Below the pieces are notes generated by a model that saw only the letters and a program-made list of their open reading frames with translations, was not told the origin of the DNA and ran no database searches. A program made the translations under genes and the position numbers. Positions 1,114 through 54,184 of a stretch of DNA of 64,000 bases are shown here, piece after piece. Source of the DNA: Leucoraja ocellata (lineage: Eukaryota); contig JAWMAR010000026.1 in assembly GCA_036785375.1 (NCBI GenBank), positions 8,432,001-8,496,000 of the forward strand, read 5' to 3'. The stretch's first letter is position 1, and every line of letters begins with the position of its first letter.

Positions 1114-1212
1114 TTCCATTACCCGATAATCCATTTCATAACTGGATTTATGGTTGCATCGGAGCAGGATTGATACCTCTCATAATCATTATTTTCATTG
1201 TGAAACGGAAAG
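1114..1212 (+). CDS. A1 transmembrane exon (neutral TM)
   Basis: tttacag|TT...AAA G|gtaagg, 99 nt; hydrophobic [20 protein letters not shown] followed by KRK stop-transfer. Confidence 0.85.
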
Positions 1213-4200
1213 GTAAGGCTCCTAAACTTTTTGATCTCGAGATTGTTATAAAATTAACCAATCAAAATTCAGCAATACTTTAGTTAGAAATACAGCTCGG
1301 AAACAGGTGATTCGGCCCACCGAGTCGGCGCCGACCAGCGACCCCGTCATAGTTACACTATCGTACACACACTAGGGACAATTTACAGTTATACCAAGCC
1401 ATTTCATCTACAAATCTGTACGTCTTTGGAGAGTGGGAAGAAACGGAGATGCAGGAGAAAATAATATTGGAGAGTTATATTGGATCGGACACTGCATGCG
1501 TTAGCTGGTCTGTGGTACATACGCCCCATCTCACTGAGTGCATCGTTTCTCGGAAGCTAACTTTTGAGTTAGTCACCGATTTGTTCATGCAGGATAGCTG
1601 CTTGGTGTTTTGGGGCAGGTTGTGGGATAAGGGGTTGAGTGTGAAAAATGGGTCGGTGATGCAGAAACACATTCTGTAATTGAATGTGCTCCGGCTCGTA
1701 GAGGACTAATATCCTGTAGATTTTTAACAATTGGTATCGTGATATTAGTTTTGCTACATACATGTATACAAACTCAAAAGTTTAAAAAAATGTATATGCT
1801 GCCAGATTTACTGGCTACTACGATTCTTTGTAATGGCCAAAAGTTTTGTATTCAAAATTACCTCACTCTAGGGACGTGCAGAAAATCGAAAGGACGTGCA
1901 GGGCATACAACAAAGGTAAGACATGTATAATACTGCAGAGACGTTCAAACAGCACTCGGACATCCTCCCAATTATTACCTTCGTTTGGATAATTACAAAA
2001 TTCTACAAGTCAACTTTCGTGATGAAATTGGAGCAAAATGAAATTCCTCAGTAATGCCTTCAAATGCAAACACAGCTACTGCAGGCCCATGTGTGTACTT
2101 GATGTTTGTTAATGGAAGCATGGCGATAGAAACGTAGAATTGGGAGAAGGAATACGCGACATGGTCCTTCGACCTTTCTTGGTCGTTCAATACTTTCTCC
2201 CATTGTCCCTTGATCCCTGAGACTTGTTTCGCGCTGTAGTTCTCTCTCATATTATAACAATGTTCACATCATTTTGAATAAATGTCATAATTTGGATTCG
2301 AGTGATTTGTGAGATAGATTTTCTTCTCTCCTGGAGAAGAACGCTGTCCCCATTACAGTTTGAAATCGTTTTTCCCGTATTATTTTACAATGGTTCCTGG
2401 TACTGGGGTTCCCATCAATGGGAAATGACATTACTCCATCATATCTCTCCTATACCGTGGATTTGTAAACAATTGTCTGGCTGCCTTCTCATGCGTCCAA
2501 ATTTTAGTGAAATCACCTCAATTTAACCCAATGCATACGCTAGACTTGACAGTCTATCAGTCTGTTGAAATCTCACTGAGCTCACCCCATCATAGGAAGA
2601 TCTCGTCACAGTCAAAGAGACCAAAGAAACGCACGCCTCTCAAGGAGACCAGTCATCAAGGTCTATGCAAGTCGATACATTCCTTTTCCGATAGCTTTTT
2701 TCATCGGAATTTGGCATGCTGCTGGAATGTACGATGTTTAATTTTGACTATTGTGGTAAATTTATGGAAAATATTTTGATTGGTAGGAAATAATTCTAAC
2801 ATAATACTGTTTTTTAGACTAAGCATTTGGAATCCGATGAAGCAATTGTTTACAGTGATTTCCGTATCGCTGATGCAAAGCGATCTGCCGAAGATAAATA
2901 TGCAGAACCGAGCACAATATATACCCAGGTATATGCAACATGCGCCATTTCACGGAGCAGCGAATGAATCACAGTTGAATGGAATTTCGAGATGTATCTG
3001 AGTGCTTCGTTCGTAGCTTTGTCTAATTGCAATTAACAAAATGCACTCAAAAAGGGGGGAAATCTAATAGAAACGGCAGAATTGAGGGCCTTTGCTTTAG
3101 TTTAATTTACTTTTCGTGAATAAGCGAGGCTATAATCCATAATACACCACTAACTGAAATTCAGGTGGTGATTAAAGGGCACAATCTTGAATCTCTCTCG
3201 TGCTTCAGATAAAGGTGCTGTCATATTGCTTCGTGTAGAAGCTTGGGGGATTTAGACCCAACGAGGAGGGAGGACTGGCAACCAATTTCTAAGTAAAGAA
3301 CGTGTATGACTCGGAGAGGAACCTACACGTGGCAGTGATCCCATTCAAACTTTGTTCTCTAGGAGTGGAGATCAAAAGATTGCTTTGCGCTTATGCAATG
3401 GATGGGATGAATAGCTGCAGTGTACGTAGTAAATAGTACACTGGTGAAGGAAATAACTGCTTACGGTAGCTGGGTTGGTAACCAAATGCACCGATTTGAC
3501 CTGCATGGTGTCGGGTGTCTGGAATTGGAACATTTGCTGGAACTGCACTCGGCTGGCCAGATGAAAGTCATTCTATCACATGCTCAAATTATGCTTTGAC
3601 GATGAGAAACTGTTTCGGAGTCAGTGATTGGGGTAGCTTTTCGCAGGATACACCGCCTACTCTTGCAGCTCTACTATTTATGAGGCTAATCCTCGTGCAT
3701 TTGTGATCTATGATAAGTACTAAAGAGTTGACGTTGGAGGATTCAGTGACCGCAATGCCACTGAAGTTCAGGGTAACCTGTTGGACTACATTTTTTGTGA
3801 TGTCACTCAACACCTTTAGTCTATCCGGTCGTGAAATTGCCAACAGGGATGGACTATTTGAATTTCTGAGAATTTGCAAGCGGAACGGAATAACACCCCA
3901 GATGTGATTTAAGATGGACGGAAGGTCATTTATGAGCAATTCAACATGTATGAGCCTACGATACAGCCCAGAATATTTCCCGTGGTGAAGCTAACGCTCT
4001 CGGATAGTTAATCTGGAGCAATAACAACCAGTGCACCGCATGACTCCAGTTATACATAACTCAATTATACTGTAATTGGAATATACCCGTGATAGAAATA
4101 GTGCAGGGAACATTCGCCTGATTGATCTTTGCGGTGATTGGTTTTGCTACATGGGGAGATGTTAGGAACATATATTGGAGAAGAGAGAATAANNNNNNNN

Positions 4201-7200
4201 NNNNNNNNNNNNNNNNNNNNNNNNNNNNNNNNNNNNNNNNNNNNNNNNNNNNNNNNNNNNNNNNNNNNNNNNNNNNNNNNNNNNNNNNNNNNNNNNNNNN
4301 NNNNNNNNNNNNNNNNNNNNNNNNNNNNNNNNNNNNNNNNNNNNNNNNNNNNNNNNNNNNNNNNNNNNNNNNNNNNNNNNNNNNNNNNNNNNNNNNNNNN
4401 NNNNNNNNNNNNNNNNNNNNNNNNNNNNNNNNNNNNNNNNNNNNNNNNNNNNNNNNNNNNNNNNNNNNNNNNNNNNNNNNNNNNNNNNNNNNNNNNNNNN
4501 NNNNNNNNNNNNNNNNNNNNNNNNNNNNNNNNNNNNNNNNNNNNNNNNNNNNNNNNNNNNNNNNNNNNNNNNNNNNNNNNNNNNNNNNNNNNNNNNNNNN
4601 NNNNNNNNNNNNNNNNNNNNNNNNNNNNNNNNNNNNNNNNNNNNNNNNNNNNNNNNNNNNNNNNNNNNNNNNNNNNNNNNNNNNNNNNNNNNNNNNNNNN
4701 NNNNNNNNNNNNNNNNNNNNNNNNNNNNNNNNNNNNNNNNNNNNNNCTTCTTCTTCGTTTTCTTCTTCTTCTTTTTCTTCTTCTTTTTCATCTTTTTCTT
4801 CTTTTTCTCCCTTTTCTTCTTTTTCTTCTTCTAAAAACCTGCAATATTTTAGAGGCTGACAAATAGGTGTTGATATTTATTCTGATTTGGTTGCTTAGAA
4901 TCAGGGTTTGCAATCTCATAATGAGGATATAACATATTTGCAGGGATAGCATTATGAATCAAGACTGATCCCTGCAACATGATGTGACAATTGACAACCC
5001 AGACACAATGAATAATCTGACAAGATATGATGTCATTATTATATTAGGGAAGCAATGCATTTGAGATTACTGCATGGTAAGTTTTTTATGTACAGTGTAG
5101 TGTGTTTGATATCTGTAACATACTGTCAGGGGAAGTGCTAGAATCAGATACAATTGCTATGTTTAAATGGCTTTTATATAGATACATCCACGGGCAATAG
5201 TTTCCAAAACTGGTCATAAGTATAGATGGGCATAAGCTCGGTATTATGTCCTTGGCAGAAGGATCTATTTTTGCACTGTCCGACTCTTTGACTGCAAAGC
5301 ACACGAGATAAAGATTAGTGGTAATATTTCAACTGCAGTAGAGACACTAGAAGGCACTCCTGACGCTATTGTTTATTTTTGTTTAAGTTCTGGGCATTAG
5401 CCTGAGTGTGGACGCTGATATTGCTTTGCTCACACTGCCTGGGGAGTTCGATGATTTAATGGAGATTTAATTGATAGCATACTTCTCCACATATGCTCAT
5501 TGTCTGTTGTAGGTCGATCAATTCTCAAATCACGGCTTTTTGGAGTTTTGGGGGGGGGGGGGGGGAGCCTGGTTCAAGGCCTTGTCTTTACTTCAAAGCC
5601 TGTGCTGTCACATCTAAAATGGATCTAAATATCACCGTTATTATTTGACTTAATTCAGAAATAACATCAGGTACCGAGTTGGATTGCATTTATTGCAGAA
5701 TTCTTAAGACCCCTCAGTGACAGAGGTCGGATGTTTTGCAATGCCCGGGCATCCCAGCTGAAGGGGAATTTTGGGAGGTGATGTGCAGCACGGTGACTGA
5801 AAAGATTGAGAAAGTTGCTGTGGTTATCACGCAATCTTTCTTGGTTTGGTGCTCTTATGAATGTTAGATTTGTGGGTTTCATTTTGTAGGTAATGTAAAC
5901 TGGGGACCATTTGCAAGGGTAGTTAAAACCGAAAATAACTTTTCATACGCAATCTTCATTAATAGTTGTCATGTAGCTCTTGAAGTAGAAGTGTTTGAGG
6001 ACTGTTCTCATTATTTTCTCTGCGGCATGTATTAGGGAGCCCCGCGTATTCCATTACATGAAAGTGTTGGTCCCAATTATTGCATCTGTAATGTCCCTTC
6101 TCTTCCTGGCTAGGAGGTGTGAGCCTGTAATTTCGTATCCGAATTGCACCTACACAATAGTGAATTTCCTGCACGTCAGTCCAGATACATCCACTAATAA
6201 TGAAAATGTATCATAGCATCTGGCAGTTTAATTTTAATTTAAATATTCTTATTTGAATTTCACATCAATTTGCATACATAGAATGATAACAGACAGTGAC
6301 ACTCAAGGCATAATAGTGCAACAGTATGTAAGCGACCCTCAAAGCCCTTACCCTTACCCACCTTCAACCCACCCGAATCAGGTCGGAACCAAACGGGGAC
6401 AAACAACACTCACATACGTACACATCCACACAAATACATAGAGATAAACAAAACAAAATGTACTGGGAAAAAAGAAAGAAAAAAAAAAGAAAAAAGACAC
6501 TAATAACAGTAAATAAGTAGGTAATTAAATAAATAAGTGAGGGGGGGGGGCTAAGGGGGGAGCAGCTGCAGTAAAGCAGGACAGTAATGGAAAGCACTCA
6601 GTCCTCTTCTGAATCCGGGGACAAGTTAAGAGAGTTAACAAGTTCCAGGAAAGGGTTCCATGTGTCTAGGAATGTCTTGGTAGAGCCTTTGAGAGAGAAC
6701 CTAAGTTTTTCAAGCTCTAAATTGTAGAGCACCTCCTTGATCCGTGTGTCGGGGGATAGGTGAGCCTCCAGTTAAGCAAGATCAGTCTCCGGGCTAACAA
6801 GATTGTAAAAGCCAGTACCCGCTTCAACGCAACAGAGAGGTTGGTGTTGGGAGGAGTGCCAAAAGTCTGACAGTGGGTTTGAAGGAATAGTCTGGCCATA
6901 GGCTCTGCTGATTCCTGGGATGTCAGGACTTTCTTATGAAGAAAGACTGGATAGACTCGGTTTGTACTCGCTAGAATTTAGAAGATTGAGGGGGGATCTT
7001 ATAGAAACTTACAAAATTCTTAAGGGTTGGACAGGCTAGATGAAGGAAGATTGTTCCCGATGTTGGGGAAGTCCAGAACAAGGGGTCACAGTTTAAGGAT
7101 AAAGGGGAAATCTTTTAGGACCGAGATGAGGAAAACATTTTTCACACAGAGAGTGGTGAATCTCTGGAATTCTCTCCCGCAGAAGGTAGTTGAGGCCAGT

Positions 7201-9012
7201 TCATTGGCTATATTTAAGAGGGAGTTAGATGTGGCCCTTGTCCTAAAGGGATCAGGGGGTATGGAGAGAAGGCAGGTACAGGATACTGAGTTGGATGATC
7301 AGCCATGATCATATTGAATGGCAGTGCAGGCTCGAAGGGCCGAATAGCCTACTCCTGCACCTATTTTCTATGTTTCTATGTTTCTATGCTTATCACGTCG
7401 AAAACACTCCTCCAAAAGGCTGCCAGTTTAGGGCAAGACCAGAACATATGGCTATGGTTGGCAAGGAATTGATTACATCTGTTGCAGGTGTCCCTAACAG
7501 CGAGGTAAATTCTAGATAATCTTGCATTTGTGTAGTGGACTTTGTGAAGCACTTTGCATTGGATTAGGCCATGACGGGCACATATGGAGGAAGAATGGAT
7601 CAAATCCAAGGCAGAGTCCCATTGCTGGTCTGTTAGTTTCGTATTCAGCTCGCTCTCCCACGTAGCTTTTAATGAGGTATGAGGTTTCAATATAACCGAC
7701 CCTAACAAGTTATACAAAACAGAAATGCATTTCTTCCGGTTGGGGTCTAGCACTAGGATGGTATCGGTCAGCGTTTCAGGGGGGCGATTTGGGAAATGGG
7801 GAAATGTCTTCTTCACAAAATCCCTAATCTGGAAAAAACGAAAAAGGTGGGAGTTTGGGAGGATGTAGTTGGACAAGAGCTCCGCAAAGGATGAAAAAAT
7901 GCCATCCTTGTATAGGTTTTTGATACTACTGATACCGTTACCATGCCAAGTTTTGAATGCGGGGTCTGTACTTGAAGGTTTAAAGATGTGATTTTTAAGC
8001 AGTGGGGTTAAGATGGAAGGGCAGTTTAATTTTGTTCATTGAGTTTCATGTTAAATGAAAGTCGGCAGGAAAATCAGTTCTGATGGCTAAGTAGACAGTG
8101 GTGCAATACTAAGTAAAGTCAAATTTAGAATGGAAATTGGTGTTTCCATGGGCCACTCCATGACAGTAAGAATAAAATAAGTTTCCAATTGTGGCCTGGT
8201 TACCATGCACAATAGTTTGATGCTCTCAATGGCAAATAAACAAGTAAGGATATTTGGTATTGGAAAATGTTTGAACTGATAAATTTGAGAACCATCAGAA
8301 AATGGTAAATAGAAAATATTTTTCTCTCACTTGTATTTTTTGATGACACAGCAGAGAAGCTTAATGAAAGGGAAACATCCCAAGTGAGCTTTTAATAAAG
8401 TGCAGACAGAAGGCTGGCAAGCGAGTCTGTGGCCAAATAAATAAAATATAACACTTAAATGCACAAAAAGGGGATCAGTAAGAGAAGGCGCCCCCGTTCA
8501 AATAAACCCTAGCTAGTTGAATTTAAAGACACAAGAGAGAACATTTACTTTCAATTCGATCAACATTGGGAAATGATGCAAATGAGGCCTTCAGCAACTA
8601 TTTCCATGCAAGAACATTAAAAAAAAATTAAATCACTTAGCAGTATATTTTGTTTGGCTTGATGCTAATGCATAGTCTTATGTTTAGCCAATGATCACTG
8701 GACAACCCAGAGCAGCGATAAATGAATCCATTTGTTCTTTCGCAGAAGAAAATATAATATTAATATAATAACATTTTTCATATTAATAAAGGCATTTGTT
8801 ATTTTGCTACCATTTACAATGTCCATTACTGGCGGCGGTGGTGTATTTTTGGAAATATGTTGATTGATGTAATAATTATAACAAATTGTGATAACTTTCA
8901 GACAATGCAATCCGAATGTGATCCAAAGTTAACGTATACTACTCTAAACATTGCTGGTCTAAAACCATCTACTAAATGCAGATACGTTGAAGAAAGCACG
9001 GTGTATGCCCAG
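1114..9012 (+). CDS. Gene A1 (3' part): inhibitory-type IgSF receptor; TM exon 1114-1212, cytoplasmic exon 1872-1915, ITIM exon 8902-9012; 5' exons lie upstream of the window
   Basis: AG/GT-bounded, phase-compatible exons (1-1, 1-0, 0-0). TM exon (V)[32 protein letters not shown] has no charged TM residue. 44-nt exon [15 protein letters not shown]. 111-nt exon [37 protein letters not shown] contains ITIM LTYTTL. TM and 44-nt exons are paralogous to those of A2. Confidence 0.75.
4193..4746. other. Assembly gap (N run), followed by a (CTT/T)-rich simple repeat to about 4832
   Basis: N characters. Confidence 0.99.
6340..8020 (-). mobile_element. L1/Tx1-type LINE 3' fragment, interrupted by a CR1 insertion
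   Basis: ORF 7376-7876 with zf-RVT-like CNRC...HMFWSCPKL; ORF 6717-6899 ([11 protein letters not shown]) continues the ORF2 C-terminus. Confidence 0.75.
6915..7388 (+). mobile_element. CR1/HER1-type LINE 3' end nested in the L1 fragment
   Basis: RTRGHSLRI...[14 protein letters not shown]; (TTTCTATG)n tail. Confidence 0.85.
8902..9012 (+). CDS. A1 cytoplasmic exon with ITIM (LTYTTL) and a second tyrosine motif (TVYAQ|)
   Basis: tttcag|ACA...CAG|gtaagt, 37 codons; aligns by eye with B1 exon 13601-13687 (YxxL/M-N...EExTxYxQ). Confidence 0.75.
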
Positions 9013-9119: not shown

Positions 9120-9960
9120 CATAGACAATAGGTGCAGGAGTAGGCCATTCGGTCCCCCGAGCCAGCACCGCCATTCAATGTGATCATGGCTGATCATCCA
9201 AAGAGCTCTATCTCACTTTCTTTTGAATGCATCCAATGAATCGCCCTCTACTGCCTCCAATTCCACAAATTTGCAGCCCTCTGGGTGAAAATGTTTTTCC
9301 TCATCTCAGTCCTAGATGGCTTACCCCTTATTCTTAAACTGTGGTCCCTTTAAGGACTGGATTCCCCCAACATCGGGAACATGTTTCTTGCATCTAGCGT
9401 GGCAAATCCCTTAATAATTTTATATGTTTCTAAATTCCAGTGAATACAAGCTCAGTCGCTCCAGTCACGCCATCCTGTGAATTAACCTCGTGAACCTAAG
9501 CTGCACTCCCTCAATAGCAATAATGTCCTTCCTCAAATTAGGAGACCAAAACTGCACACAATACTCCAGTTGTGGTCTCATCAGGGCCCTGTACAACTGC
9601 AGAAGGACCTCTTTGCTCGTATACTCAACTCCTATCGTTATGAAGGCCAACATGCCATTAGCTTCCTTCACTGCCTGCTGTACCTGCATGCTTACTTTCA
9701 ATGACTGATGTACAAGGACACATAGGTCTCGTTGTACTTCCCTTTTCCTAACCTGACATAATTCAGATAATAATCTGCCTTCCTGTTCTTTCCACCAGTA
9801 GATAACCTTGCATTTATCCACATTATACTTCATTTGCCATGCATCTGCCCACTCGCCCAACCTGTCCAAGTCACCCTGAATCCTCATAGCATCCTCTTCA
9901 CAGTTTACACTGCAACCCAGACTTGTGTCATCTGCAAATTTGCTAATGTTACTTTTAGTT
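9120..9960 (-). mobile_element. CR1-type LINE 3' fragment
   Basis: ORF 9465-9887 (QGDLDRLGEWADAWQM...LYRALMRPQLEYCVQFWSP). Confidence 0.85.
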
Positions 9961-11532
9961 CCCTCATGTAAATATTGTTACTTTTAATTCCCTCATCTAC
10001 CCCCCCCCCCCCCCCCCCTCCCCAGCTACAACCAGTAGAATGAAATCAAGAACATGTAGATATAACCGCCAACATTGGCTCTTTCGCTCTCTCTTTGCTT
10101 CGATTATTTTGGATGGATTTCGTCATCTCGGCCAAGCCAATATTTATTGATCATTAATAACGGCGATTGAGGAGATCGTAATAGCCGCATCCTTGAACTT
10201 CTGCTATCTACTTGCTAGACTCGCGCTGTTATTGGGAGGCAGTCCAGAAAAGTAGACCCAATGACGGTGAAGGACTAATGATAAAATCCCTATATCAGGG
10301 TGGTTTGTGACCTTGACAGGAACCTGCTAAGTATTTCCATACTGCCCTTCCAGCGTTGGAAGAAATGTGCGTAGGGCGATGGGCTGGTGTTGCTGAGATG
10401 GACTGCTTTTTTCCGGAATTATGTCGTTTCCGTGGAGTTACTGGAACTCATCCAGACAAATGGAATTGGGGTTTTTTCATATACTTAACTTCTGCTTTGA
10501 AATGGAGGAAAGATTTCATGGTGTCATATGGACTGAATTTGCGTTTATTATCATTTGCACAGGGATAGCCAGGTACAAGTACAATGACAACCTTACTCGC
10601 AGCAGCATCACCGGCACCAAGAATCAGGAGGCATACTACAACATGACATACATAATTATACTTAAGTCATAAGTAACTTCTGCTGGGCAGTAGAAAAAAT
10701 AAGCAATATGGCAGAAAAAAAGAAATGGTTGCAAAACACCCTTAAAAAAAACAAGCTCATAGTTGTGCCATCGTGTTTTATTAGTGAGGTGGAATTGGGA
10801 TTGAGCAGGCTACTTCAAAAACCTTATGGTTGTAGGAAAGTGCCTGGTCCTAAACCTGGTGGCGTGGGGTTTTAGGCCTCTGCGCTTCCTGCAGGATGGT
10901 AGAGGCGTGAGACGGCATGTACCTGATGGTTGGGAGCCTAGACGGTAGATGCCACCATCTTGAGGAAATGCCTCATGTTGATGCTTTAAATGGTGAGGAT
11001 GCTGGGGACGGTGAAGTACATAGAGCTGGTTGATGACCAGCATGGATAGGGTCGGCCAAATAGCATGTTTTCTCTCAATTATTCTCGACATGAAGCACCA
11101 AGAAGATAATTTATACAGTAGTAGACGGCTAAAAGCTAAAACCTTATAATTTCTTAGTCATGAAATGTTGAAATAATTATAAGAAGAAAGGAATTAAACA
11201 ATATGAAAACAAGCTGATCAAGGATAATTTACCAATACATTGTTCGAGCGATGAGATAGGAGATGTATTTTCAATTCAGTGAATTCTTGAAATGCGCAGA
11301 TTGTCGATTAAATATGACAAATTATATCATAGGTGAAAGTAAACGCACAATTCAGTTGCAAATGATCAGTGGCAAAGACCATGTGGCTGTCTTATATCTT
11401 GTATTCCATTGGACGAGTATGTCTATCAATTAAAACGTTGCATTTATTTTGGTGGCGTAGTTACTGAGGGACAGCTGTCAAAGCAAAAGCTGAAATGAAT
11501 TGACGACTATGTTATGAAACACTATTTTACAG

Positions 11533-11613
11533 ACAATACATGGCCGACCTGAACGCATGGCCGAAGAAATGAATATCAATACAGGAAACATCAACCAAAT
11601 TGTACAATCGTAA
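11533..11613 (+). CDS. Candidate terminal coding exon of A1 (TIHGRPERMAEEMNINTGNINQIVQS*)
   Basis: ttttacag acceptor, phase 0, open to TAA; no homology support. Confidence 0.3.
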   Translation, partial: TIHGRPERMAEEMNINTGNINQIVQS

Positions 11614-13381
11614 TCTGCCTTACACTGCAAAATTCGCAGGAATGTTGAGTAGTGTCAAGGCAGCCATATTTTCCAGTGCATTTGGAACATTATCGCTGGA
11701 AGTTCTGTATTTGTTGGGTTTTGTTCAGTTTATTTATGGATCCATGCTTTCCTGATTGAAAACACGCCAATTTAGTCGACTGTTCTGCAAACAATATGGA
11801 TTATTTCAAGCTCTTACTGACTAAAAAATTGCTCTTTTGTACCCAACCGGCCCAGTGACAGCACCAATTATGAATTTTCCAATAGTATTCATCTTTCAGA
11901 TCATGCAAATTGTCCATTAACTAACGTAAGGATCTGTATGTGAACTGACGTGGAGATGTTTTTGTACTCAGGGGTCATATCTTATCGAACAGTAAATGTT
12001 GCAAGAATTAAAAATAGACTCTTCAGGTTAGACCGCTAATCGGCACGAGTAGAAGCCGGGCACATACGGCTTGTTTAGTACGAGTGGGACATGTACAGTC
12101 GATACAGTCGGAGTTTCTTCGTCAATTGAATTGTCCGCAACATGGACGTCATATTTTTATTGTAGGTGAACATTTCCGTGCTAAATCTATATAATACCAA
12201 TATATCGTAGTAATTATTTTTGCTGTTAATCTCTGTGAATCAATAAATCCGTTTTACTTCTTGAATGTCAGTGTTGCTTATTATTTCTGCCTTCTTGATT
12301 CTTATATGGCTTGAATTGGAAATCTATTCTGACTATCGTCACTGTCTATTCCTTCAATAATTTGACACACGTGTAGCAGGTCGCCATTCAGCCTCGTACC
12401 CTTGAGGTATACATGACAATTATATCAAATTTCACCCCATAAGTGTATGTAACACCTCACATTTCTCTGTATTCCATTCCATCAACCATTCCTCAGCCCA
12501 CCTGGCTAATCGATCCAGATCCTGCTGCTATATTTCACAACAATCTTTACTATCTGCAAAACCACTCACTTGTATCATCAACAAACTTGCTAATATTGCC
12601 CTGTATGTTCCCATCCAAATGACACGACCACAGCTGGGAAGAAACTGTCACTGGATCTGGACGTATGCGTTTTCATACTCTGTCCCTCTTGCCTGGTGGG
12701 TGAGGTGAGAAGTTGGAGTGTTCGGGTTGAGACCCTACCTTGATTATACCGATGGCTTTGCGAGGCAGCGCGCAGTGTAGATGGAGTTAATGGCAGGGAG
12801 ATGGTTTGCGTGACGGTCTGGGCTGGTCCACGATTCTCTGCTATTTCTTACGGTCTAGGATGGAGCTATTCCCACGCCACCTGTGATACATCCCGATAAA
12901 ATGCTTCATACGATGCATATGTTCAGTTTTCTTAAACTATGAGGAGTACAGACAGGACAGATGTTCAGGGTCTTTATCTTAATATTGTGGAGATATGTTT
13001 AACTGGCGAGGGTATGCTTAAAATGAGATGAGTAGAAAAGCGTGGGGTAATTATGTACACAGAATGTGGTTACTACCATGGACGAGCTGACAAAATTACA
13101 GCCTTTCACTTGCATTTCCACAGGCACTTAGATAGGGAAAAAGTAGAGCGATGATCTTATGCGGTTAGCTAGGATTTGCGGTGAAAGGCATTTATTGTGC
13201 CGAACAGCCCTTATCAAGGGTAACATTCATCAAAGTAGATCATCTCTCATTAAAATCCCCTGCTCACTGCGCATTGTCTTGTAAATGATTGTCTGTACGA
13301 TCTGTGACACAATGTTAATCAGCTTTATGTAATTGAAATATCGTTCGCTTCAGAGTGAATGGACGCTAGCTGGTTTCACAG

Positions 13382-13687
13382 CTATTGAAAAATCCTGATT
13401 CCTGCGTACTCTGTTTCATTGTTCTTCGCCGTTCTTGAATGTTTCAGAGAAGCGGCGAGATCCAGAGTTGCATAGGTCAGTTTATGTTCTGACACTTCTT
13501 TGACCTGTCGAAAAATAATCAGAGATCATGAGCTGCTGATTCGCCTATATGGGCGACGTACACGGATTTTCCTTGCAGTACACTTCCGCTTTTACCATAC
13601 CTGGCCATAGGTTGTTCGTTCTTCGTGGCGTTTGTTTTTCGTAGTTTTCTTCTGTCCGCTGAAGTTCATATCTGCATACGAAGGATA
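13382..13687 (-). CDS. B1 tyrosine-motif exons (13601-13687 and 13382-13504): ITIM/ITSM tail
   Basis: YPSYADMNFSGQKKTTKNKRHEERTTYGQ|VKEVSEHKLTYATLDLAASLKHSRTAKNNETEYAGIRIFQ*. Confidence 0.85.
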
Positions 13688-23110: not shown

Positions 23111-23229
23111 TCTGAAGCAAGATGATGAAATTCAACGATGTTTGTTCTCTGACAGCGAGTCAAGCAGTGAAGCTTGTTGGCGAGCGTCTTGCAGCAATAC
23201 CGCGTGGTCCGAATGGTTCCGTTTTACTT

Positions 23230-23237
23230 TGACGTCA
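23230..23237. promoter_or_regulatory. CRE-like palindrome TGACGTCA about 120 bp upstream of the B1 ATG
   Basis: Perfect TGACGTCA, retained in the B2 paralog at 54290-54297. Confidence 0.35.
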
Positions 23238-43549: not shown

Positions 43550-43580
<31 letters not shown>

Positions 43581-43884
43581 GGTACCGAGATCTCGTAAGG
43601 GAGCTTCAAAATCAGTAAGTGTCCCATTTGTCTTATATGTTTTAAGTGTTGACAGTATTACATTTTGGTAAACCTTTGGTCGATTGTCTGATCATTTATC
43701 GTATTTCTATCGACGTTAAGGGGGGTAACGTATATCAGAGTAGAACATCTCTCATTAAAATTCCCTGCTCACTGCTGATTCTCTTGTAAATGCTAATGTA
43801 TCTGTACAATCTGTGACCCAATGTTAGTAAGGTTTATGGAATTGAAATTGGATGAACGTTAATGAACGTTTGATGATTTCGCAG

Positions 43885-44190
43885 CTATATTAAAATCTTC
43901 ATTCCTGCATATTCTGTTACATTATTCTTCTCCGTTCTTGGGTCTTTCGGAGAAGCGATGAGATCCAGAGTAGCATTGGTCAGCTTATTTTCAGACACTT
44001 CTTTGACCTATCGAAAAATAATCAGAGATCATTAGCTGCCGATTCGCCTATATGGACGACGTACGCGAATTTATATTGGAGCACCCTTCCGCTTTTATCT
44101 TACCTGGGCATTGGTAGTTTGTTTTTCGTGCCGTCTGTTTTTCTCAGTTTTCCTCTGTCCGCTGACGTTCAAATCTGCACACGTCGCATT
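43885..44190 (-). pseudogene. Vestigial B2 tail exons (44104-44190 and 43885-44007) with mutated ITIM/ITSM tyrosines
   Basis: NATCADLNVSGQRKTEKNRRHEKQTTNAQ|VKEVSENKLTNATLDLIASPKDPRTEKNNVTEYAGMKILI*; same lengths and splice sites as B1, but downstream of the stop/frameshift. Confidence 0.8.
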
Positions 44191-44819
44191 CTGAGGGAAC
44201 ATATATTGGAAGAGAAATAAACTCCGCATTTACAAACAACTGCGAAGACGAGGAAACATAAAACAATGGGGTGAAAGTTGGTTGTGCTATACGCTATAAA
44301 CGGCTACTTCCCTGGGATAAGAGCCCTAAAAAGTAATTGAAGTAATTGGTTTGCTTTTCCTGAATAATTAGTGACTATTAGCCAAATCTTGACACGTGTG
44401 GTGCAGAACACTGACCGGAAGTTTGTTGGATGATAACTTCTGGGAAAATATCCAGGTGGCGCGGTTTCTGGGCTCAGACATGTTAGCAATATTTTCCGTC
44501 ATATATCAGTACGAGCTACTGCACAAAAAATGTCGTGTGAGTTTCGAATTAGAACAGGATGGGCCTCGGTGATGATGCTTCACGGAGTGTTTAATTCGCT
44601 TGACACAGACGGGTTATACATAAACTGAAGGTAGAGAATAGGCGGCGTTTCGGGTCGAGACTCTACCTCAGTTTGATCAGTCTGAAGAAGGGTATCGACC
44701 CGAAACGTCGCCTATTGCTTCTCTTCATAGATGCTGCCTCGCAGGCTGAGTTTCTCCAGCATTTTTGACTACCTTTGATTTTTCCAGCATCCGAAGTTCT
44801 TTCTTAGACATAAACTGAA

Positions 44820-45355
44820 AGTTAACATGCAGGTATTAGGTGTCCTAGTTTGAGGAAGGACATTATTGGTATTGTGAGAGTGCAGCGTTGGTTCACCAGT
44901 TTAATTTCCGGGATGGCGTGACTGATATATGACGAAAGAATGGATCGACTGGGCTTATATTCACTGGAATTTAGAAGGATGCGTCATCAAACATATAAAA
45001 CTATTCAGGGATTGGACAGGCTAGATGCAAGAAAATGTTCCCCTTGTTGGGGGAGTCCAGAATCAAGAGTCACAGTTTAAGAATATGGGGTAGGCCATTT
45101 AGGACTGAGATAAGGACACACGTTTTCACCCAGAGAGCTGTGAATCTGTGGAATTCTCTGCCGCAGAAGGCAGTGGGGGCCAGTTCACTGGATGCATTCA
45201 ACAGAGAGTTGGATATAGCTCTAGGGTCTAGGGATATGGGGAGAAATCAGGTACAGGGTACTGATTCTGGATGATCAACCATGATCATATTAGATGACGG
45301 TGCTGGCTCGAAGGGTCCAATGGCCTACTACTGCACCTGTTTTATATGTTTCTAT
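44820..45355 (+). mobile_element. CR1-type LINE 3' fragment, block 2 only
   Basis: ORF 45035-45274 ([17 protein letters not shown]); tttctatg tail. Confidence 0.8.
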
Positions 45356-45559
45356 GTAACTGTTTGGGAGAAAGATTCGCAAGCGCTGGTCGCTGACGAT
45401 CATGGACTATACCATAAGAATACGGGAGGATAAGAAAAATTGCAAACGAGACACATAGAGAGTTTCACGAAAAATGGAACCATCCTGTTCGCCCATCAAT
45501 GTGATTATAATTACAGGCGTCCATTTGCAGAACATGATACGACAGGTTATACAAGAAAA

Positions 45560-48500
45560 TCACTTGTTTCCAAAGTAGTGGGTTATGTCCACAATATGTT
45601 CTGGGGCTAGCAGAGAACATAAACAACCAAATTTAATTATCAACATGTCACAACCTGCCGGCCGATAATCAGTTGAGAATCGATTTGTGACCAGATTCGT
45701 TCGGCTGCAGAATGTGATCATTGCGGTCATGCTATTCTTGTTATTTGAACAAATCCTCTCCTCGTTAGTCCTACTGCTGAGGAAAAGCGCGTGGAAAAGT
45801 TCAAAACCTCTGGTTTGAATACGCTCTCCTGTGATAACTGCCCTTATTTAAACAACCCGACCTTTGCAGCATTTCACATAATGTTAACAGCGCCATCTTG
45901 TATTACAAACGATAACAATGCTTTTACAGCCAACGGACATAATGCTACGGCCGGAGAAAAAGGCCCTGGTGTTTAAATCGTTACATGAGCTCATCTCGTT
46001 GCTCCTTCAATTGAACATTGTTATTTTCGGAGAAAACACGAAATGTTGTAGTTATTCAGCGGGTTAGGCATCGTCTACGGGGATCATCGGTAGATGAAGT
46101 TTCGGGTCAGGACCCTTCTTTACACGTGACTCAAACCCAACCCCCCCTATCCATTGCCTCTCCAGATGCTGCATAAATAGCCGAATTATTCCAGCACTGC
46201 GTTTTGCATCTGCAGTTCCTCATGTCGCAAATCTCAGACAAGGGTGAAGTCGCATCTTACCTTCAGTACTGTCTAATTCGTACCACCTGACAAAAAATAC
46301 CACCGCTAGAATAATTAACACGCATATGGCAAATCCACCCGCCCGAAAGTAGATGAGTTTAAGGCTTGTTCCTAAAGGGAAATGAAAGCTGAATATTAGA
46401 ATTTTTCAGAGAGGTTATCTTCATTAAATAATCAGATTACACGAAACAGGGAATTACAGGATGGGTTCCACATTTTCTCTCATCTCTCAAATGCATGACT
46501 GCTACACAACATTCCATCTGCCACTTGTTTACACTCACGCTCCCAAGCTGTCCAAGTCCTTCTGCAGACTCCCTGCTTCTTCAACACTATCTGCACCTAT
46601 CTTCATATCATCGGAAAACCTGCCGACAAAGCCATCAATTTCATCCTCTAGACAATTAACATATAATGTAAATTGTAGCAGACTCAACACCGACCCCTGC
46701 AGAATACCAGTATTAAAACGTAGCTAACCACAAAAGGCCCCTTTATTGCCACGGTTTGTCTTCAGCCAGCAAGCCAATCTTCAATCCGTGATAATTCCTA
46801 ATGCCATGCGATTCTATTTTGTTTAGCGGTCTCACATAAGGCACCTTATCAAAGGCCTACTGAAATTCTGTGAACGACGCCATTGGTTTTCTTCACTACC
46901 TGCTGTACCTGCACGCCAACTTTCAGTGAATGGTGTACAAGGACACCCAGGTCACGCTGTACCCCCTTACCTAACCTAAACCCATTGAGATAATAATCTG
47001 TCCCCTTGTTTTTGCCACCAAAGTTGGTAACCTAATATTTATCTATATTATACTGCATCTGCCACGCATCTGCCCACTCACTCAACCTGCCCAGGTCAAC
47101 CTGCAACGTCCTAACATCCTCTTCACAGTTCACACTGCCACCCAGCTTTGTGTCATCTGCAAACTTGCTAGTGTTGCTCCTAATTCCCTCTTCCAAATCA
47201 TTAATATATATGGTAAACAGTTGCGGCACCAACACCGAGCATTGCGGCACTCCACTCGTCACTGCCTGCCACTCTGAAAAGGACCCGTTCACTCCTACTC
47301 TTTGCTTCTTGTCTGCCAACCAATGTTCTATCCATGTCAATACCCTACCCCCAATATCATGTGCTCTAATTTTAGTCACCAGTCTCCCATGCGGGACCTT
47401 ATCAAAGGTTTTCTGAAAGTCTAGATACACTACATCCACTGCCTCCCCTTCATCCATTTTACTTGTCACATCCTCAAAAAATTCCAGAAGCTTAGTCAAG
47501 CATGATTTTCCTTTCATAAATCCATGCTGACTTGGATTAATCATTTTACTGCTATCCAAATGCTCCATTATTACCTCTTAATGATTGACTCCAGCATCTT
47601 TCCCACCACCGAAGTTAGGCTAACTGGACTGTATATCCACGTTTTCTCTCTCGCTCCGTTCATGAAAGGTGGGATAACATTAGCTATCCTCCAATCCACA
47701 GGAACTGATCCTGAATCTATTGAACATTGGAAAATGATCACCAGCGCGTCCAATATTTCTAGAGCCACCTCCCTGAGGACCATGGTATGCAGAACATCGC
47801 CTAATTATAATTTATTTCAGTTCCTCTACCCCCCTTTGATCCTCTGTCCTCCAGTACTTCTGGGAGATTGTTTGTGTCTTCCTTAGTGAAGACAGATCCA
47901 AAGTACCTGTTCAACTCCTCTGCCATTTCCTTGGTGCCCATAATAATTTCACCCGTGTCTGCCTTCTGATTTTGCTACTCTTTTTCCCTTAACATATCTA
48001 AAGAGGCTTTTGCTGACCTTCTTTATGTTCCTGGCCAGCTTCCCCTCGTACTTCATCTTTTCAGCCGTATTGCCCGTTTTGTTTCCTTCTGTTGTCCAAT
48101 GAAAGTTTCCCAATCCTCCGGCTTCCGACTACTCTTTACTGCGTTATGCATCTTTTCTTTTAATTTTATTCTATCCCTAACTTCTCTTGTCAGTCGCGGT
48201 TGCCTCCTATTCCCCTTAGAATCTGTCTTGAAATGTCTGGGAGCACAGAACATATCAGACCGTTCAGAGGAACGCACATCAGCCGGAATTATCGCTTATC
48301 CGTATTATATGTATAACCTTTCGAACATTTTCTTATTTCTCCTTTCCTTTCATTTTCCTCTTCTGTTTGAATCTCATCACAGATCAGCAACGATGGAAAA
48401 ATAAATCATCTGAGTTAATGAAAAATAAATCATCTGTTTTAATGCTATAAAATCTGCCTTGGCCTCTGTCTTGTGGTATTGGTCCCTTGGAACTTGAAAT

Positions 48501-51500
48501 ATTTTGGATTTAGTCTGCAATGTTACAGCGTTAAGACTGAAAATTAATTTGCATATAAACAGAAAACAATGCCCTTATTATGCAGGGAAACAGCTTTACA
48601 AGTATGTGCTCGTTGGTGTTCTGTGTGCAGTCCTGGTCATCCTGCCTATACGTAGCATGTCATTATGTTGGAAAAGGTGCAGAAAGGATTCATCAGCGTA
48701 TTACTTTGATGGCTTGATTTATCCGGTAATGCTGAGCAGGTTGTAACCTCTTCCCGTGAGGCATGGGATGTTTACCTAATTGAAATATATAAAATTATGA
48801 TGGGCGTAGAGAAAGTGAATGCTTACAGTCGTTTTTGCCAGGGTAATGGATTCTTAACAGGGAAGGTTACGAGGTTCCCAAGGGGCAATTTCTTTCCGAG
48901 GAAGCTTCAGAAGCGTATTCAATTGTGGATTTTCAAATGATATTGGATAGATATTTGGATAGGAAAGATTTAGAGGGGAAATGGTCAAATGGGTCCAGTC
49001 CAGAATGCCAACTTGCTTGGCGTGGACGAGGCGGGCCGAAGGGCCTTGCTTCCATGCTGTAGAGCTCTATATAATCGGAGATAAACAGCGAGTTCCAGCG
49101 TCCGCTATTACACAAACATGCAAACACAATTGTCATCTTTGCGCGATATCTCTTACTAACCCGTATCTAGTTTCGTAGACTGTCATACCTTTCCATTTCA
49201 ACAAAGACATGCCCGCAATCTCCATCCAAATACTTAAAAACGGTCTGGCGTACGTTTTGGGTGGGAATTCATGAAATGCCTTGACATAAAACAGTGATAT
49301 ATCTCAGGACGTTATTGAAGGTATAAACCTCATACCCATTCCAGGAAAACTGTAAGTTTCAACGGTCGGAACCAGGAGGGTGACGTGAGACACGTGGCAA
49401 CTATAATTCGATCGGCGATCCACTACATGCAGGAAGCTGGAAGCAACGTATAATCCCTCGTCGTTCCGTATTGTAGTGGTACTTATTCCAGAAGTGATTT
49501 CTTGGTCATCTTTATACCAGGTGAGTTTACAGTCCTCCGGGAAAAACGGAGCAGTCGTACAGTTTAGGGCCAGGGAAGGAACGTTCACCTGTTTAATCTT
49601 CAAAGGCGTCGGTGACACTGCAAACAATTTAAGACAAATGAGTTAGTACCCCTATATCTTTATTTAGAAGACAATGTAATCGCTTTCGAAATGGATAATA
49701 CCATACCTTTTTGGGCGTTCCTTTAATAGTAAATTATTTTGACTATGTTGTTGGAAATATATAGTAGAGTAAACACTTGTTATAACGCAGTTGGCCAGGA
49801 CCACTATATATGAGCGCTATGTGAGGCGGGTGTCACCACCCATCACCTTCCCCAACGGCTTCATTCTGCCCATGCGACGAATGGAGAAACTATCGGCAAG
49901 GACGGCTGAGTCTGGGGAAGAGGGGTGAGCCAAGTCTCTGTGAAAGAGAGCACAGAGCATTCGGTCATCTCTCTTTGTTAAAGCTACCTTGCCTCCGAGA
50001 TTTCCTGGTCATGGGGGATTCACTTTTGTTTTGTGCCTAACAGTTTTAGTTTATTATCACGTGTACCGAGCCACCGTGAAATGCTTTTTGTTGTGTGTTA
50101 TTCAATCAGCGAAATTACCACACATGATTACAATCAAGCCGTCCACATTGTACAGATTCAGGATTACCGGAGTCTGTTTAACTCAAGATAAAGTCCAGTA
50201 AAGTCCGATAAAAATATAGTTTGAGAATCTCCAGTAATGTAGGTAGAATCTCCAGTAAGGTAGATGGACTTGACCTCTTTAGTTGGTGATAGGACGGGTT
50301 TGGGTATCTGCTGGGAAAGCAATGTTGCTACACCAGACAAGGCAGAGTTCAAGGTGGTACAATCAAACGGAAAATTGCGTTAATGAAATCATAAATTTAG
50401 TTCTGTTTGTATTATATGTGAAACATGCTGAAAGACAGAAGCAGCTTTATGTATGCGTGGAAGTCTTCTGAGGGACAACGCGCAGAATAATTTGCACGTT
50501 TGACATAATGTGTAGTATCTCGTGTTACCCGGGTAATAACTAAAGTTTTGAGTGAAAAGGGTATTTTTAGGAGCAACAATAAACAATACTGGGAATCTGT
50601 GGGAAGATCCGATCAAGTTTGAAAAACGTTCTGCAGAGTTGTATTTAAGATGAACTTTTAATAGTAGTCTGATAAATCTTAATAGGATAAACGACGAAGA
50701 CACCTTAGTTTTAGTGTACATAATAAAGGTAAAAAGGGAAATCGGGTGGCAGGCAGGGCGGTGGGGGGGGGGGGGGGGGGGAGTAGTTAATTTAGAATGT
50801 GGTGATGCGAGTTAACACATCGGTTGTGTCTTATAATGGAATAAATCTACAGACGCCGAGAATCGATGAAACAAGACATCAAATTAAGAGTGTATCAACA
50901 GAGGAATCGCATGTAAATACCTATATGAAGACTAGTGGATGACTCATATTGTGGCTATATTTGAGGGCTGCAAGCAAAAGTCTGGGAACTGTAAACCAGT
51001 CTGTGGTAGGAAGGCCACTGGAAATGATTCAGAGGGATAAATTATGTTCCGCATTTGATTAAAAAGGAGCTGATGGGGGGGGGGGGGGGGGGGGGGCATT
51101 TAATAGAATGAAATGTTTAGCAACATCCATTACTTAACTCCAAATAGGACACCATCTCAAAAGGCAAAGGAGCGTCACCATTATGCTCCCGTCCACGTAA
51201 CAAAAGCATTATCTCCACATCGGAGGGTAAATCATTGATCTCCATCCCAAACTGATCTACGCAAGTGCTCTCACCAGAAAATATCCGCGGATCTTTCACA
51301 AGTAGTGATCGGAAATGTACTGGAAGCAGAGCTAATCAGACCGTGAAAAATAAATTAAATGAACACCTGGTGGAAAGCAATTGAAGCGTTCCAAGAAAAA
51401 AAGGGAGCATGGGACTGACAATCCCTGGTGGCGGCCAGGTAATTGATCTCTCAATTGCAACGCAAACTTCTTTTCCTCGGTTATTGTAATTTGATGTGGT

Positions 51501-54184
51501 GAAATGTTTCGTTTACAAGGACTTGATTCCACTACTCTAGGTAAAAGGCGATGCATATACTAGATTTATTCCGGTCATGATCAGATACCCCTCAATAAGT
51601 TCACCCCTTACGCTCCTGCGCTGCAAAGAATAAAGTCCTGGCCTGCTCCGGCTCTCCCTATAGCTCAGACCCTCGCGTCGTGGCAACATCCTCGTAAATC
51701 TGCCCTATACCATTTCCAGCTTAAATACATCATGCGTAGTTGCAGAGGCGGATCCGATAGGGGCATCTTAGATATTTTTAAATTGGCAAATATAGGGAAT
51801 GAAAGGATATGTCTCACACAGAGCGGAGATTTATTTAGTTTGGCACCATATTCGGCACTGAAATTGTGGGCCGAAGGACCTATTCATGTTCTATCTTTAG
51901 GAGTTGTTGAATTGATTTTTGAGTAGTTATAAGTTTCGAAAATGATGGGATGCTTTAGGTATTTGTCGTCTTCGCAATACATGTCACGGCACTTAAACTG
52001 GACAAGGTATGGTAGCGTGTCTGTGTGTATTCAGTAAACATAGAAACATAGAAAATAGGTGCAGGAATAGGCCATTCTGCCCTTCGAGCCTGCACCGCCA
52101 TTCAATATGATCATGGCTGATCATCCAATTCAGTATCCTGTACCTGTCTTCTCTCCATTACCCCTGATGCCTTTAGCCACAAGGGCCACATCAAATCCCT
52201 CTTAAATATAGCCAATGAACTGGCCTCAACTACCTTCTGTGGCCGCGAATCCCAGAGATTCACCACTCTTTCTGTGAAAAATGTTTCCTCATCTCGGTCT
52301 TAAAAGATTTCCCCCGTATCCTTAAACTGTGACCCCTTGTTCTGGACTTCCCCAACATCTGGAACAACCTTCCTGCATCTAGCCTGTCCAACCCCTTAAG
52401 AATTTTGTAAGTTTCTATAAGATCCCCCCTCAATCTTCTAAATTCTAGCGAGTACAAACCGAGTCTATCCAGTCTTTCTTCATATGCAAGTCCTGACATC
52501 CCAGGAATCAGTCTGGTGAACCTTCTCTGTACTCCCTCTATGGCAAGAATGTTCTTCCTCAGATTAGTAGTTGCTGATGTGGGATTGAAATGTGCGGTGG
52601 GATATTTCCACCCAGAAATCGAGTACGACGCTGACGTGTAATTATCATTCGTATTGTAACTTCTGTTCTCCCACTCGACGCTCTGCTGAGTTCCAATGAA
52701 ACTCGAAGTAAAATGACGGATAACGTTTTGATTAATATTCTCGATTTGCAATTTAATCATTTGAATTCTGGTACTACTTTCATCTCCTTTGTTTACATGG
52801 TTTGTGACTTGTCGCATTAATCTCAGATTTTCCCCCGTTTATCATGTAATTTTTTTTGTCTTCCACCCATACTAATGCGCCGCCACGCACCCCACCTATT
52901 CTTCCCTGCTATACCTCTGAATTTCTTGAACAATTTTCATCATGAACTTTTGTTACTTCCGCTATAACGTTGTCGGCAGAAACTAATTTATGTAGTCGCA
53001 GATGTGTTGTGACTAGTATTTTCTCATTGATTTTCTTTGAAACTATGAATTCCTAAAATCATGGTAGAATAGTCTGTCAGAAGATTGCGGTTAGAATATA
53101 TCACGCTCACTATTCACCAAATGTTTCTTCTAACAACATACGTGTTGTTAACATTTACTAGTTGAACTAGAAATAGCTACATAAATGGTCAAACATGGAT
53201 ATTCTGCATCAAAGAGCACCATTCGCGACCCCCCTAGAATGCTCCATCATCTGGATGTCACAGGTCTCGACTCGAACGCAATGTTTTTTTGACTGAACAA
53301 CTTTAGCTACAATACTCACCAACATATGATAGCTTATATTTAATTGACTACTATCTGCAATTTTAATCTATACTTTCGCTGGATACAGTTGAGGGGCCGC
53401 CAAGAAAATTAACCCTACACATATAAATAATAACTAAATGATAGGAAATTAAAGAATAATGATTGTCCAAAGATCTCATGATCCAACAATCACGAAAAAC
53501 CAATTACTTAAATCGTTAGAGCAAAACTTCTAGTACAGACTGAGAAAGGGTCCGTTTATTGCTACTTTATAACTCTGTAGCACACCATATTTCTGTGTTT
53601 GTATTGTGATTCGAAACATCAAGTAAGACTCACCGTGTACAATAATCCTCGTGCCATTGCTTTTGGAAGTCTTTCCATTCCCGCCTCTCACACTGCAATA
53701 ATAGATCCCGGAGTCACGGAAGCTCACGTTCAACAGATGTAATTCGGCCGATCCCTTCAGGACATTGTTCATTATCATCCTACTGTTTGCGGTGGGATTC
53801 AACGTCCCTTCTTGACCGTCTCTCTTCCAGTATACATCCACCAGTGCATTCTGACCGAAGTTCGGGAAAGTACAGTATAGGGATACATTTTCACCTTTCA
53901 CTTTCGTTACCTCATCGGGAACCTGACGCGCCCTGAACGAGGAGGCCTCTTCAGTAACTGTCAAAATTAAAAACAAACGTTAAACATGTGAAATGACAAT
54001 GAACGGATTGATAAAAAAATCAAAATGGCTGAAATAGCTCGACCGAAAATTAAGCGTTGTACATCTTATACTTTTCGCGGATTGACCTTTTCCCTGTTAT
54101 TTTCGTTTAATAGAGGGAAATATGTTAACCTGTGTGACTCATATGCAGGATCGAGAGATACAGTAGCACGGCAAACATAAACAT
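45560..54184 (-). CDS. Gene B2: activating-type paralog of B1 (TM arginine, truncated tail), 272 aa
   Basis: Leader 54130-54184, V 53634-53957, C1 49336-49617, TM 46261-46371 (LIYFRAGGFAICVLIILAVVFFV). Cyt1 45560-45606 ends in TGA after a 1-nt deletion relative to B1. Confidence 0.85.
46261..46371 (-). CDS. B2 transmembrane exon with Arg (codon 46343-46345)
   Basis: GTSLKLIYFRAGGFAICVLIILAVVFFVRWYELDSTE; CTG>CGG relative to B1. Confidence 0.85.
46870..48220 (-). mobile_element. CR1-type LINE RT fragment
   Basis: ORFs 47032-47568 (QHGFMKGKSCLT...YLDFQKTFDKVPH...KFADDTKLGG) and 47571-47783. Confidence 0.88.
49336..49617 (-). CDS. B2 C1-set exon
   Basis: Same length and boundaries as the B1 C1 exon; 9 amino-acid differences counted by eye. 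Confidence 0.9.
52035..52565 (-). mobile_element. CR1-type LINE 3' end, block 2 only
   Basis: NLRKNILAIEGVQRRFTRLIPG...RTRGHSLRI; (CATAGAAA)n tail on plus. Confidence 0.85.
53634..53957 (-). CDS. B2 V-set exon
   Basis: Same length and boundaries as the B1 V exon; 6 amino-acid differences counted by eye. Confidence 0.92.

Follow-up and report, generated by a model that had tools for sequence, protein, structure and literature searches.

The region described here is a stretch of the genome of the skate Leucoraja ocellata (contig JAWMAR010000026.1, positions 8,432,001 to 8,496,000), called the window below and covering 64,000 nt with a G+C content of 42.8%. It contains four receptor-like genes of the immunoglobulin superfamily (IgSF), designated A1, B1, A2 and B2, which probably represent paired inhibitory and activating receptors. 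In a self-comparison by blastn, the window resolves into two colinear blocks, each of which is a cassette of two convergent genes, with A on the forward strand (+) and B on the reverse strand (-).

Two cassettes of convergent genes

The matches between block 1 (A1 and B1) and block 2 (A2 and B2) found by self-blastn are the following:

435-2670 and 39356-41663: 71.9%, A part
13218-14151 and 43723-44626: 80.0%, B tail part
14191-15532 and 45418-46853: 73.5%, B tail part
19278-21371 and 48277-50387: 85.9%, B V/C1 part
21452-22103 and 52598-53247: 88.5%, B V/C1 part
22173-24010 and 53244-55068: 90.2%, B V/C1 part

Block 2 contains an extra 2.2 kb at 50.4-52.6 kb. The A part (72%) and the tail part of B (73.5-80%) have diverged to a similar degree. 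The data therefore fit one old duplication of a two-gene cassette, and the blocks would then be tandem, diverged copies from that single event. The preliminary description of this locus had considered that block 2 might be an alternative haplotype. A divergence of 10-28% is far too high for this, and two haplotypes of one locus are therefore ruled out.

The window is interrupted by two runs of N:

4193-4746: assembly gap 1, within an A1 intron, between exons 2818-2928 and 8902-9012
30735-31038: assembly gap 2, intergenic, with a GAGT/GAAT simple repeat on either side

No reading frame passes through gap 1. The link between the A1 transmembrane (TM) exon and the A1 exon containing the motif LTYTTL does span it, and rests on an exon order and strand identical to those of a Mobula gene model. 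The adjacency of the two blocks hinges on gap 2, with the A2 leader (32609-32660) lying beyond it.

The gene plan begins with a split leader and a V exon that has a J-like end; a single C1-set exon and a TM exon come next, then a mini exon of 44 nt and finally the exons with tyrosine motifs. Exons were searched singly or as separate alignment rows. Every V exon ends in a J-like stretch followed immediately by a GT donor; since V and the J-like end thus share one exon up to the donor, there is no recombination signal. Leaders were located for A2, B1 and B2, and A1 is present in the window only from its TM exon onward. The exons of the A genes, with the related database proteins (P numbers) that they match, are as follows:

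1114-1212, +: A1 TM exon, neutral; phase 1 to 1, donor GTAAG; matches the TM segment of Mobula P0180 (E 2.7e-4)
1872-1915, +: A1 mini exon, 44 nt, cytoplasmic; phase 1 to 0, GT donor
2818-2928, +: A1 cytoplasmic exon with tyrosine sites IVYSDF and TIYTQ; phase 0 to 0; matches the P0180 tail (E 0.003)
8902-9012, +: A1 cytoplasmic exon with LTYTTL, an immunoreceptor tyrosine-based inhibitory motif (ITIM), and TVYAQ; phase 0 to 0; 58.5% identical to the P0180 tail (E 9e-10)
11533-11613, +: probable last coding stretch of A1, with a stop at its end; matches the P0180 C-terminus (E 0.006)
32609-32660, +: A2 leader exon
32832-33143, +: A2 V exon with J-like end GTGTKLVV; Pfam V-set 2.7e-8; 96.6% identical to P0181
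36130-36432, +: A2 C1-set exon; Pfam C1-set 1.2e-12; 95.7% identical to P0181
40048-40140, +: A2 TM exon, with Arg
40809-40852, +: A2 mini exon, 44 nt, GC donor; read-through leads to a stop after 10 codons

If the donor of the A2 C1 exon is left unused, 10 more codons followed by a stop are read at 36433-36465 (+), which would give a possible soluble V-C1 form.

The exons of the B genes, including sites that resemble an immunoreceptor tyrosine-based switch motif (ITSM), are as follows:

23056-23110, -: B1 leader exon
22564-22887, -: B1 V exon, its J-like end partial, with an immediate GT donor; Pfam V-set 1.4e-13
20341-20622, -: B1 C1-set exon; Pfam C1-set 1.9e-12; best match in the PDB is UrIg2 (8.7e-15)
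14962-15072, -: B1 TM exon, neutral
14301-14344, -: B1 mini exon, 44 nt; phase 1 to 0, donor GTAATT; aligns to the corresponding segment of P0009
13601-13687, -: B1 cytoplasmic exon with SYADM and TTYGQ(V); phase 0 to 0
13382-13504, -: B1 last coding exon with LTYATL (ITIM), TEYAGI (ITSM-like) and the stop; resembles the tails of P0005 and P0009
54130-54184, -: B2 leader exon
53634-53957, -: B2 V exon; Pfam V-set
49336-49617, -: B2 C1-set exon; Pfam C1-set
46261-46371, -: B2 TM exon, with Arg
45564-45606, -: B2 mini exon, 43 nt (44 nt in B1), donor GTGATT; if unspliced, an immediate in-frame TGA follows
44104-44190, -: corresponds in B2 to the SYADM/TTYGQ exon of B1; both tyrosines lost, and the shifted frame stops after 7 codons
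43885-44007, -: corresponds in B2 to the last exon of B1, with LTNATL (tyrosine lost) and TEYAGM; the predicted transcript reads it out of frame

Direct splicing of the B TM exon to the SYADM exon was rejected on the grounds of its frame, and this led to the identification of the 44-nt mini exon. A TM-like frame on the + strand (19602-19658 and 48594-48650) sits in the intron between the C1 and TM exons of B in both blocks, and was dropped as an alternative TM exon because it lies on the strand opposite to B. A tblastn search of the window with the TM segments of P0018, P0164, P0189 and P0192 (E<0.05) detected no alternative Arg-type TM exon.

Transmembrane segments, tails and ectodomains

A single base separates the TM segments of the two blocks at one aligned place. 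Between A1 and A2, whose TM exons have a mean column identity of 87%, GGA (Gly) becomes AGA (Arg); between B1 and B2, which share 98 of 111 nt, CTG (Leu) becomes CGG (Arg). Between B1 and B2, the TM exon as a whole has 12 non-synonymous changes and 1 synonymous change. Outgroup Mobula proteins have Gly (P0180, A type) and Leu (P0005, B type) at the aligned place, and the Arg is therefore derived in both A2 and B2, having arisen twice. In both genes it sits in the outer third of the TM segment, and the Cys located two residues ahead has likewise given way, to Trp in A2 and to Tyr in B2. The motif Cys-x-(Gly/Leu)-Ala-Gly of A1 (1146-1202) and B1 (14999-15055) thus corresponds to (Trp/Tyr)-x-Arg-Ala-Gly in A2 (40074-40130) and B2 (46289-46345), so that Cys loss parallels Arg gain. 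A Gly-Cys-x-x-Gly-Gly-type TM motif is common among ITIM-type relatives. The A2 and B2 TM exons retain strong acceptors and donors.

Five tyrosine motifs were located in the tails of the block 1 genes:

8929-8946, +: LTYTTL, A1, canonical ITIM
13667-13681, -: SYADM, B1, YxxM site
13598-13615, -: TTYGQV, B1, ITSM-like
13463-13480, -: LTYATL, B1, canonical ITIM
13397-13414, -: TEYAGI, B1, ITSM-like

Across the six frames of the window, a loose ITIM pattern by itself has 298 matches, and support for the tail exons therefore comes from homology to annotated relatives and from splice phases. The tyrosine exons match the tails of such relatives with E values of 9e-10 to 1e-5 (about 1e-5 for the B1 exons against P0005 and P0009), and the splice phases agree. 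The short exon after the TM exon shifts the phase from 1 to 0 in all four genes, and is 44 nt long in A1, A2 and B1. The exon chains of A1 and B1 agree with the gene models of the relatives P0005, P0009 and P0180.

The block 2 tails are lost in two different ways. In A2, homology to A1 stops at 41663, which is 150 nt short of the place of the first tyrosine exon, and no counterpart was detected for any A1 tyrosine exon in the A2 region at 40.9-43.8 kb. In B2, both tail exons remain with intact splice sites, and three of the four tyrosine codons are changed; when the mini exon is spliced at its retained GT, the following exon is out of frame and a stop is reached after 7 codons. These tail exons are 70/87 and 102/123 nt identical between B1 and B2, no higher than their flanks. 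On the predicted splicing, the tails would end 10 codons (A2, by read-through) or 1-7 codons (B2) past the mini exon.

The preliminary description had assigned neutral TM segments and tyrosine-motif exons to A1 and B1, and a TM arginine with a short, ITIM-less tail to A2 and B2. The TM alignments, the exon tables and the homology to the tails of relatives bear out the assignment for block 1, and the codon changes, derived with respect to the Mobula outgroups, do so for the two arginines. All of the motifs it listed were located, but only LTYTTL and LTYATL are canonical ITIMs. Both block 2 tails are indeed cut, although in B2 the tail exons are still present and are cut off by the 43-nt mini exon.

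The ectodomain exons of B1 and B2 show a different pattern. The V exons are identical at 316/324 nt and the C1 exons at 271/282 nt (96-97.5%), forming islands of 96-99% identity; adjoining 100-nt windows are 86-93% identical and the tail part 72-88%. Of the 19 differences in V and C1, 3 are synonymous, with proportions of synonymous and non-synonymous differences (pS and pN) of 0.022 and 0.035. Synonymous divergence in these exons falls short of that seen in the introns (Poisson P 6e-4 or less), which argues for a recent homogenisation of the ectodomain exons; the simplest reading would be that homogenisation occurred recently and that the amino acid changes came afterwards. In known paired receptors, too, ectodomains are reported to be kept alike, in part through gene conversion.

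Relatives in cartilaginous fishes and comparison with known systems

A phmmer search with the B1 V exon against 1.84 billion representative sequences produced 673 matches at E<=0.001, including proteins of 260-380 amino acids with the same build. A family profile search detected 51 proteins at E<=1e-10 among 8000 scored candidates. Named members come from at least 15 species, all of them sharks or rays apart from one chimaera, and all 20 of the 20 family proteins looked up are chondrichthyan; the A and B genes belong to a multigene family known so far only from cartilaginous fishes. Automatic annotation has given its members a variety of names, including SHPS-1-like, SIRP-alpha-like, SIRP-beta-1-like, NCR3LG1-like (B7-H6-like), tapasin-related-like and Ig lambda-like. 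One member, P0181 from Leucoraja erinacea, is 96% identical to A2.

Both types of receptor recur within the family. The 59 database rows with the C1 motif include 23 of the ITIM type and 9 that combine an Arg in the TM segment with a short, motif-free tail. A tree of C1 domains, built from few columns by a quick method, requires at least 8 changes between inhibitory and activating labels, and B1 and B2 are among several mixed sister pairs starred in it. Rows without a TM segment make up 15 of the 62 in the family set, many of them perhaps partial models.

A full-text literature search with partial coverage recovered no paper describing this V-C1 family or its pairing. The family has gene models in databases, but neither a name nor a study was found for it in that search. 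The novelty proposed in the preliminary description is weaker than it seemed there, as the genes are annotated in many sharks and rays and in a chimaera, in both ITIM and Arg-TM/short-tail forms.

In paired receptors generally, a member with an ITIM tail is matched by a member with a charged TM residue, which recruits adaptors with an ITAM (immunoreceptor tyrosine-based activation motif). Like ectodomains are found here in B1 and B2, the V and C1 exons of A1 being outside the window. An ITIM tail in one member is found in B1 (LTYATL) and in A1 (LTYTTL, in an exon past gap 1), and on the predicted splicing A2 and B2 both combine a basic TM residue with a short ITIM-less tail.

In the SIRP proteins, too, a V domain ending in a J-like stretch precedes a C1-set domain, and one member bears an ITIM tail where its partner bears a short tail and a basic residue in the TM segment. 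SIRP-alpha-like clusters are the nearest named language-model-feature clusters of the family (0.96), and the SIRP-alpha ectodomain ranks fifth in the profile search of the PDB (5.9e-23); these are ranks of similarity only, and not of orthology. However, the V-C1-C1 arrangement of SIRP is not seen, with a single C1 exon separating V from TM in A2, B1, B2 and the models of their relatives. The basic TM residue of SIRP-beta is Lys, acting through DAP12, whereas the skate genes have Arg.

The closest solved structure is UrIg2, both for the B1 C1 exon and for the family profile (1e-29). UrIg and UrIg2 likewise have a split leader, a single VJ exon without a recombination signal sequence (RSS) and C1-set domains, as described in PMC12227049. 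There are nine C1 domains in nurse shark UrIg2 according to the same text, and only one here. The role given there for UrIg2 is in liver, gill or extracellular matrix and not in lymphocytes, whereas the skate A and B genes carry signalling tails; the term "ITIM" was absent from that text in a term search (PMC12227049, available portion).

Other systems are less similar. NKp30 (NCR3), which has no C1 domain, turns up in the PDB search with the B1 V exon as one of the single-V-domain matches (2.3e-4), and CD276 is among the best 60 matches of the family profile (2.7e-21). B7-H6 is absent from the top 60 PDB matches for the B1 V exon, for the B1 C1 exon and for the family profile. In rearranging Ig and TCR genes, V and J are separated by RSS, whereas here a single exon holds both V and the J-like end. 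NITRs are not known to have a C1 domain. The NITRs of bony fish and the MDIRs of the clearnose skate follow the same paired logic, but neither has a V-C1 ectodomain; activating and inhibitory IgSF families were already known from skate, the MDIR domains being CD300/TREM/pIgR-like (PMC3031540).

Proposed paired signalling and its alternatives

The exon anatomy, the duplication, the derived arginines, the tail lesions and the likeness of the B1 and B2 ectodomains are consistent with a set of paired V-C1 receptors, inhibitory in block 1 and activating in block 2, to which a rough probability of 0.55 may be assigned from sequence. A1 and B1 would most likely be inhibitory, their tail tyrosines, once phosphorylated, recruiting SH2 phosphatases in keeping with the established role of the motifs. 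A2 and B2, which have each gained a TM arginine by one base and lost the tyrosine tail by different lesions, would most likely be activating partners, with the arginine pairing with an ITAM adaptor that has an acidic TM segment. The genes would then be expressed, spliced in vivo as predicted and active in signalling, and would share a ligand. The preliminary description had proposed that a whole cassette was duplicated and that both of its genes switched sign; the duplication and the dichotomy in both pairs can be seen in the DNA, but the change of sign in signalling has the standing of a prediction.

Several observations weigh against this assignment. Sampled words of 40040-49700 occurred in no RNA run, and runs were taken by species label instead; four were mapped to 40373-46372, with the A2 TM exon, both C1 exons and block 1 lying outside, and with 1.1-1.9 billion letters read per run (5-25% of each) from unrecorded tissues. 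At this shallow sampling, the bins with the two B2 cytoplasmic exons and the B2 mini exon had zero depth in each of the four runs; the B2 TM bin reached no more than 0.18, and the A2 mini-exon bin showed 0.24 in a single run. No RNA joint was found at any predicted intron in that interval. The only near-identical annotated protein, P0181, has been modelled without a TM segment, as a V-C1 read-through. Sixteen of the 19 V/C1 changes alter amino acids, a pattern compatible with relaxed constraint and with diversifying selection alike, and the loss of three of four tyrosines in B2 is within the range of neutral decay (rough estimate about 0.17). In the predicted B2 transcript, about 65 nt separate the stop from the last exon junction after it, so that nonsense-mediated decay might act on this transcript. 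The A1 exon chain spans gap 1 and its V and C1 exons are beyond the window. Finally, FcR gamma chain, FcR and LRC (leukocyte receptor complex) homologues were not found in sharks by a 2014 survey of their genomes (PMC4016189).

The RNA depth at 44.57-45.37 kb was rejected as evidence of expression, since it is repeat-derived, with 88-98% of the mapped reads running on into unlike sequence. A low depth (up to about 5) was observed on both strands at 42.77-43.77 kb, between the convergent 3' ends of A2 and B2; in the single-cell run most of it is on the - strand. This strand has poly(A) signals at 42818, 43351 and 43459 and the + strand has one at 43056, the latter followed by a run of eight A, and the depth here may correspond to the B2 3' untranslated region. 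A run of 28 G is located at 43550-43577, where RNA reads are apparently cut.

The main rival explanation is that the block 2 genes are decaying or silent duplicates, in which the tail lesions were the first steps of pseudogenisation and the TM arginines are incidental. The absence of RNA reads from the tested A2 and B2 exons in four runs would be expected in this case, as would B2 tail exons no more conserved than their flanks, the excess of non-synonymous differences (16/19 in V/C1, 12/13 in the TM exon), a possible loss of B2 transcripts to nonsense-mediated decay at the predicted stop, and an A2 model in Leucoraja erinacea without a TM segment. However, the leader, V, C1 and TM exons of A2 and B2 are all open, with intact splice sites, and V and C1 form islands of 96-99% identity amid flanks of 86-93%. 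Moreover, the Arg TM and the tail loss affect both genes, and the combination recurs in 9 annotated relatives, while the RNA sampling was shallow and its tissues unrecorded. Decay is rather unlikely as an explanation.

It is less probable still that the block 2 products serve as tail-less ligand decoys, or mainly as soluble V-C1 read-through forms, rather than as activators coupled to an adaptor. The A2 C1 read-through that stops after 10 codons would provide such a form, P0181 is one, and 15 of the 62 family rows, many perhaps partial models, have no TM segment; the link of A2 and B2 to an adaptor is itself a deduction. On the other hand, an arginine buried in a single-pass TM segment is costly without a partner, and the TM exons keep their strong acceptors and donors. 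Gap 2, which lies between the blocks, might raise the suspicion of an assembly artefact, whether a second haplotype or a misjoin, but this is highly improbable. The blocks differ by 10-28% and by the 2.2-kb insertion at 50.4-52.6 kb, the same simple repeat is found on either side of the gap, and a fraction of 0.79-0.81 of the sampled words of 40040-49700 is present in two DNA runs from two samples.

A further conjecture, for which the odds are low, concerns the paired receptors themselves: A and B could be the two chains of one non-rearranging VJ-C1 heterodimer, in which case the cassette duplication would have produced an inhibitory and an activating dimer. If true, this would explain why the convergent pair has stayed together, why both genes switched sign jointly and why their TM motifs changed in parallel. 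No stalk cysteine was seen in the A and B genes.

The paired inhibitory and activating design is ordinary among immune receptors, but the gene family that carries it here is undescribed in the literature searched. If the paired reading is correct, its logic is carried by a V-C1 scaffold of antigen-receptor-like type in the oldest jawed vertebrates still living. The locus would also be a clean record of a sign switch, requiring one base for each arginine and two different small tail lesions, with the ectodomains kept alike. Should the block 2 genes work, cartilaginous fishes must possess an adaptor with an acidic TM segment, which leaves a gap given the negative result of the 2014 survey for the FcR gamma chain, FcR and LRC homologues (PMC4016189). 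With UrIg2 as its best solved match, the family also provides comparison material for the origin of antigen receptors.

Mobile elements and a third A-like gene

The segment at 27760-30283, adjoining gap 2, looks like a rearranged long terminal repeat (LTR) retroelement:

27760-30283: two 207-nt direct repeats, 97% alike, spaced 2317 nt
28030-29145, -: integrase-like frame
29046-30078, +: zinc-knuckle and protease-like frames

Reverse-transcriptase-like frames of the long interspersed nuclear element (LINE) type are found on the - strand in introns and spacers, at 7379-8035, 9468-9977, 24150-25517, 34573-35430 and 47035-47577. Short interspersed copies, mutually 73-94% alike, occur for example at 6908-7383, 44836-45357, 52036-52570 and 58436-58969.

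A third A-like gene starts in the segment 63319-64000 (+), its leader occupying 63319-63373 and its V exon beginning near 63.69 kb. Over 96 amino acids its V domain is 67.7% identical to P0193 from Pristis pectinata, a protein with an Arg TM and a short tail, and the receptor gene array seems to continue past the end of the window.

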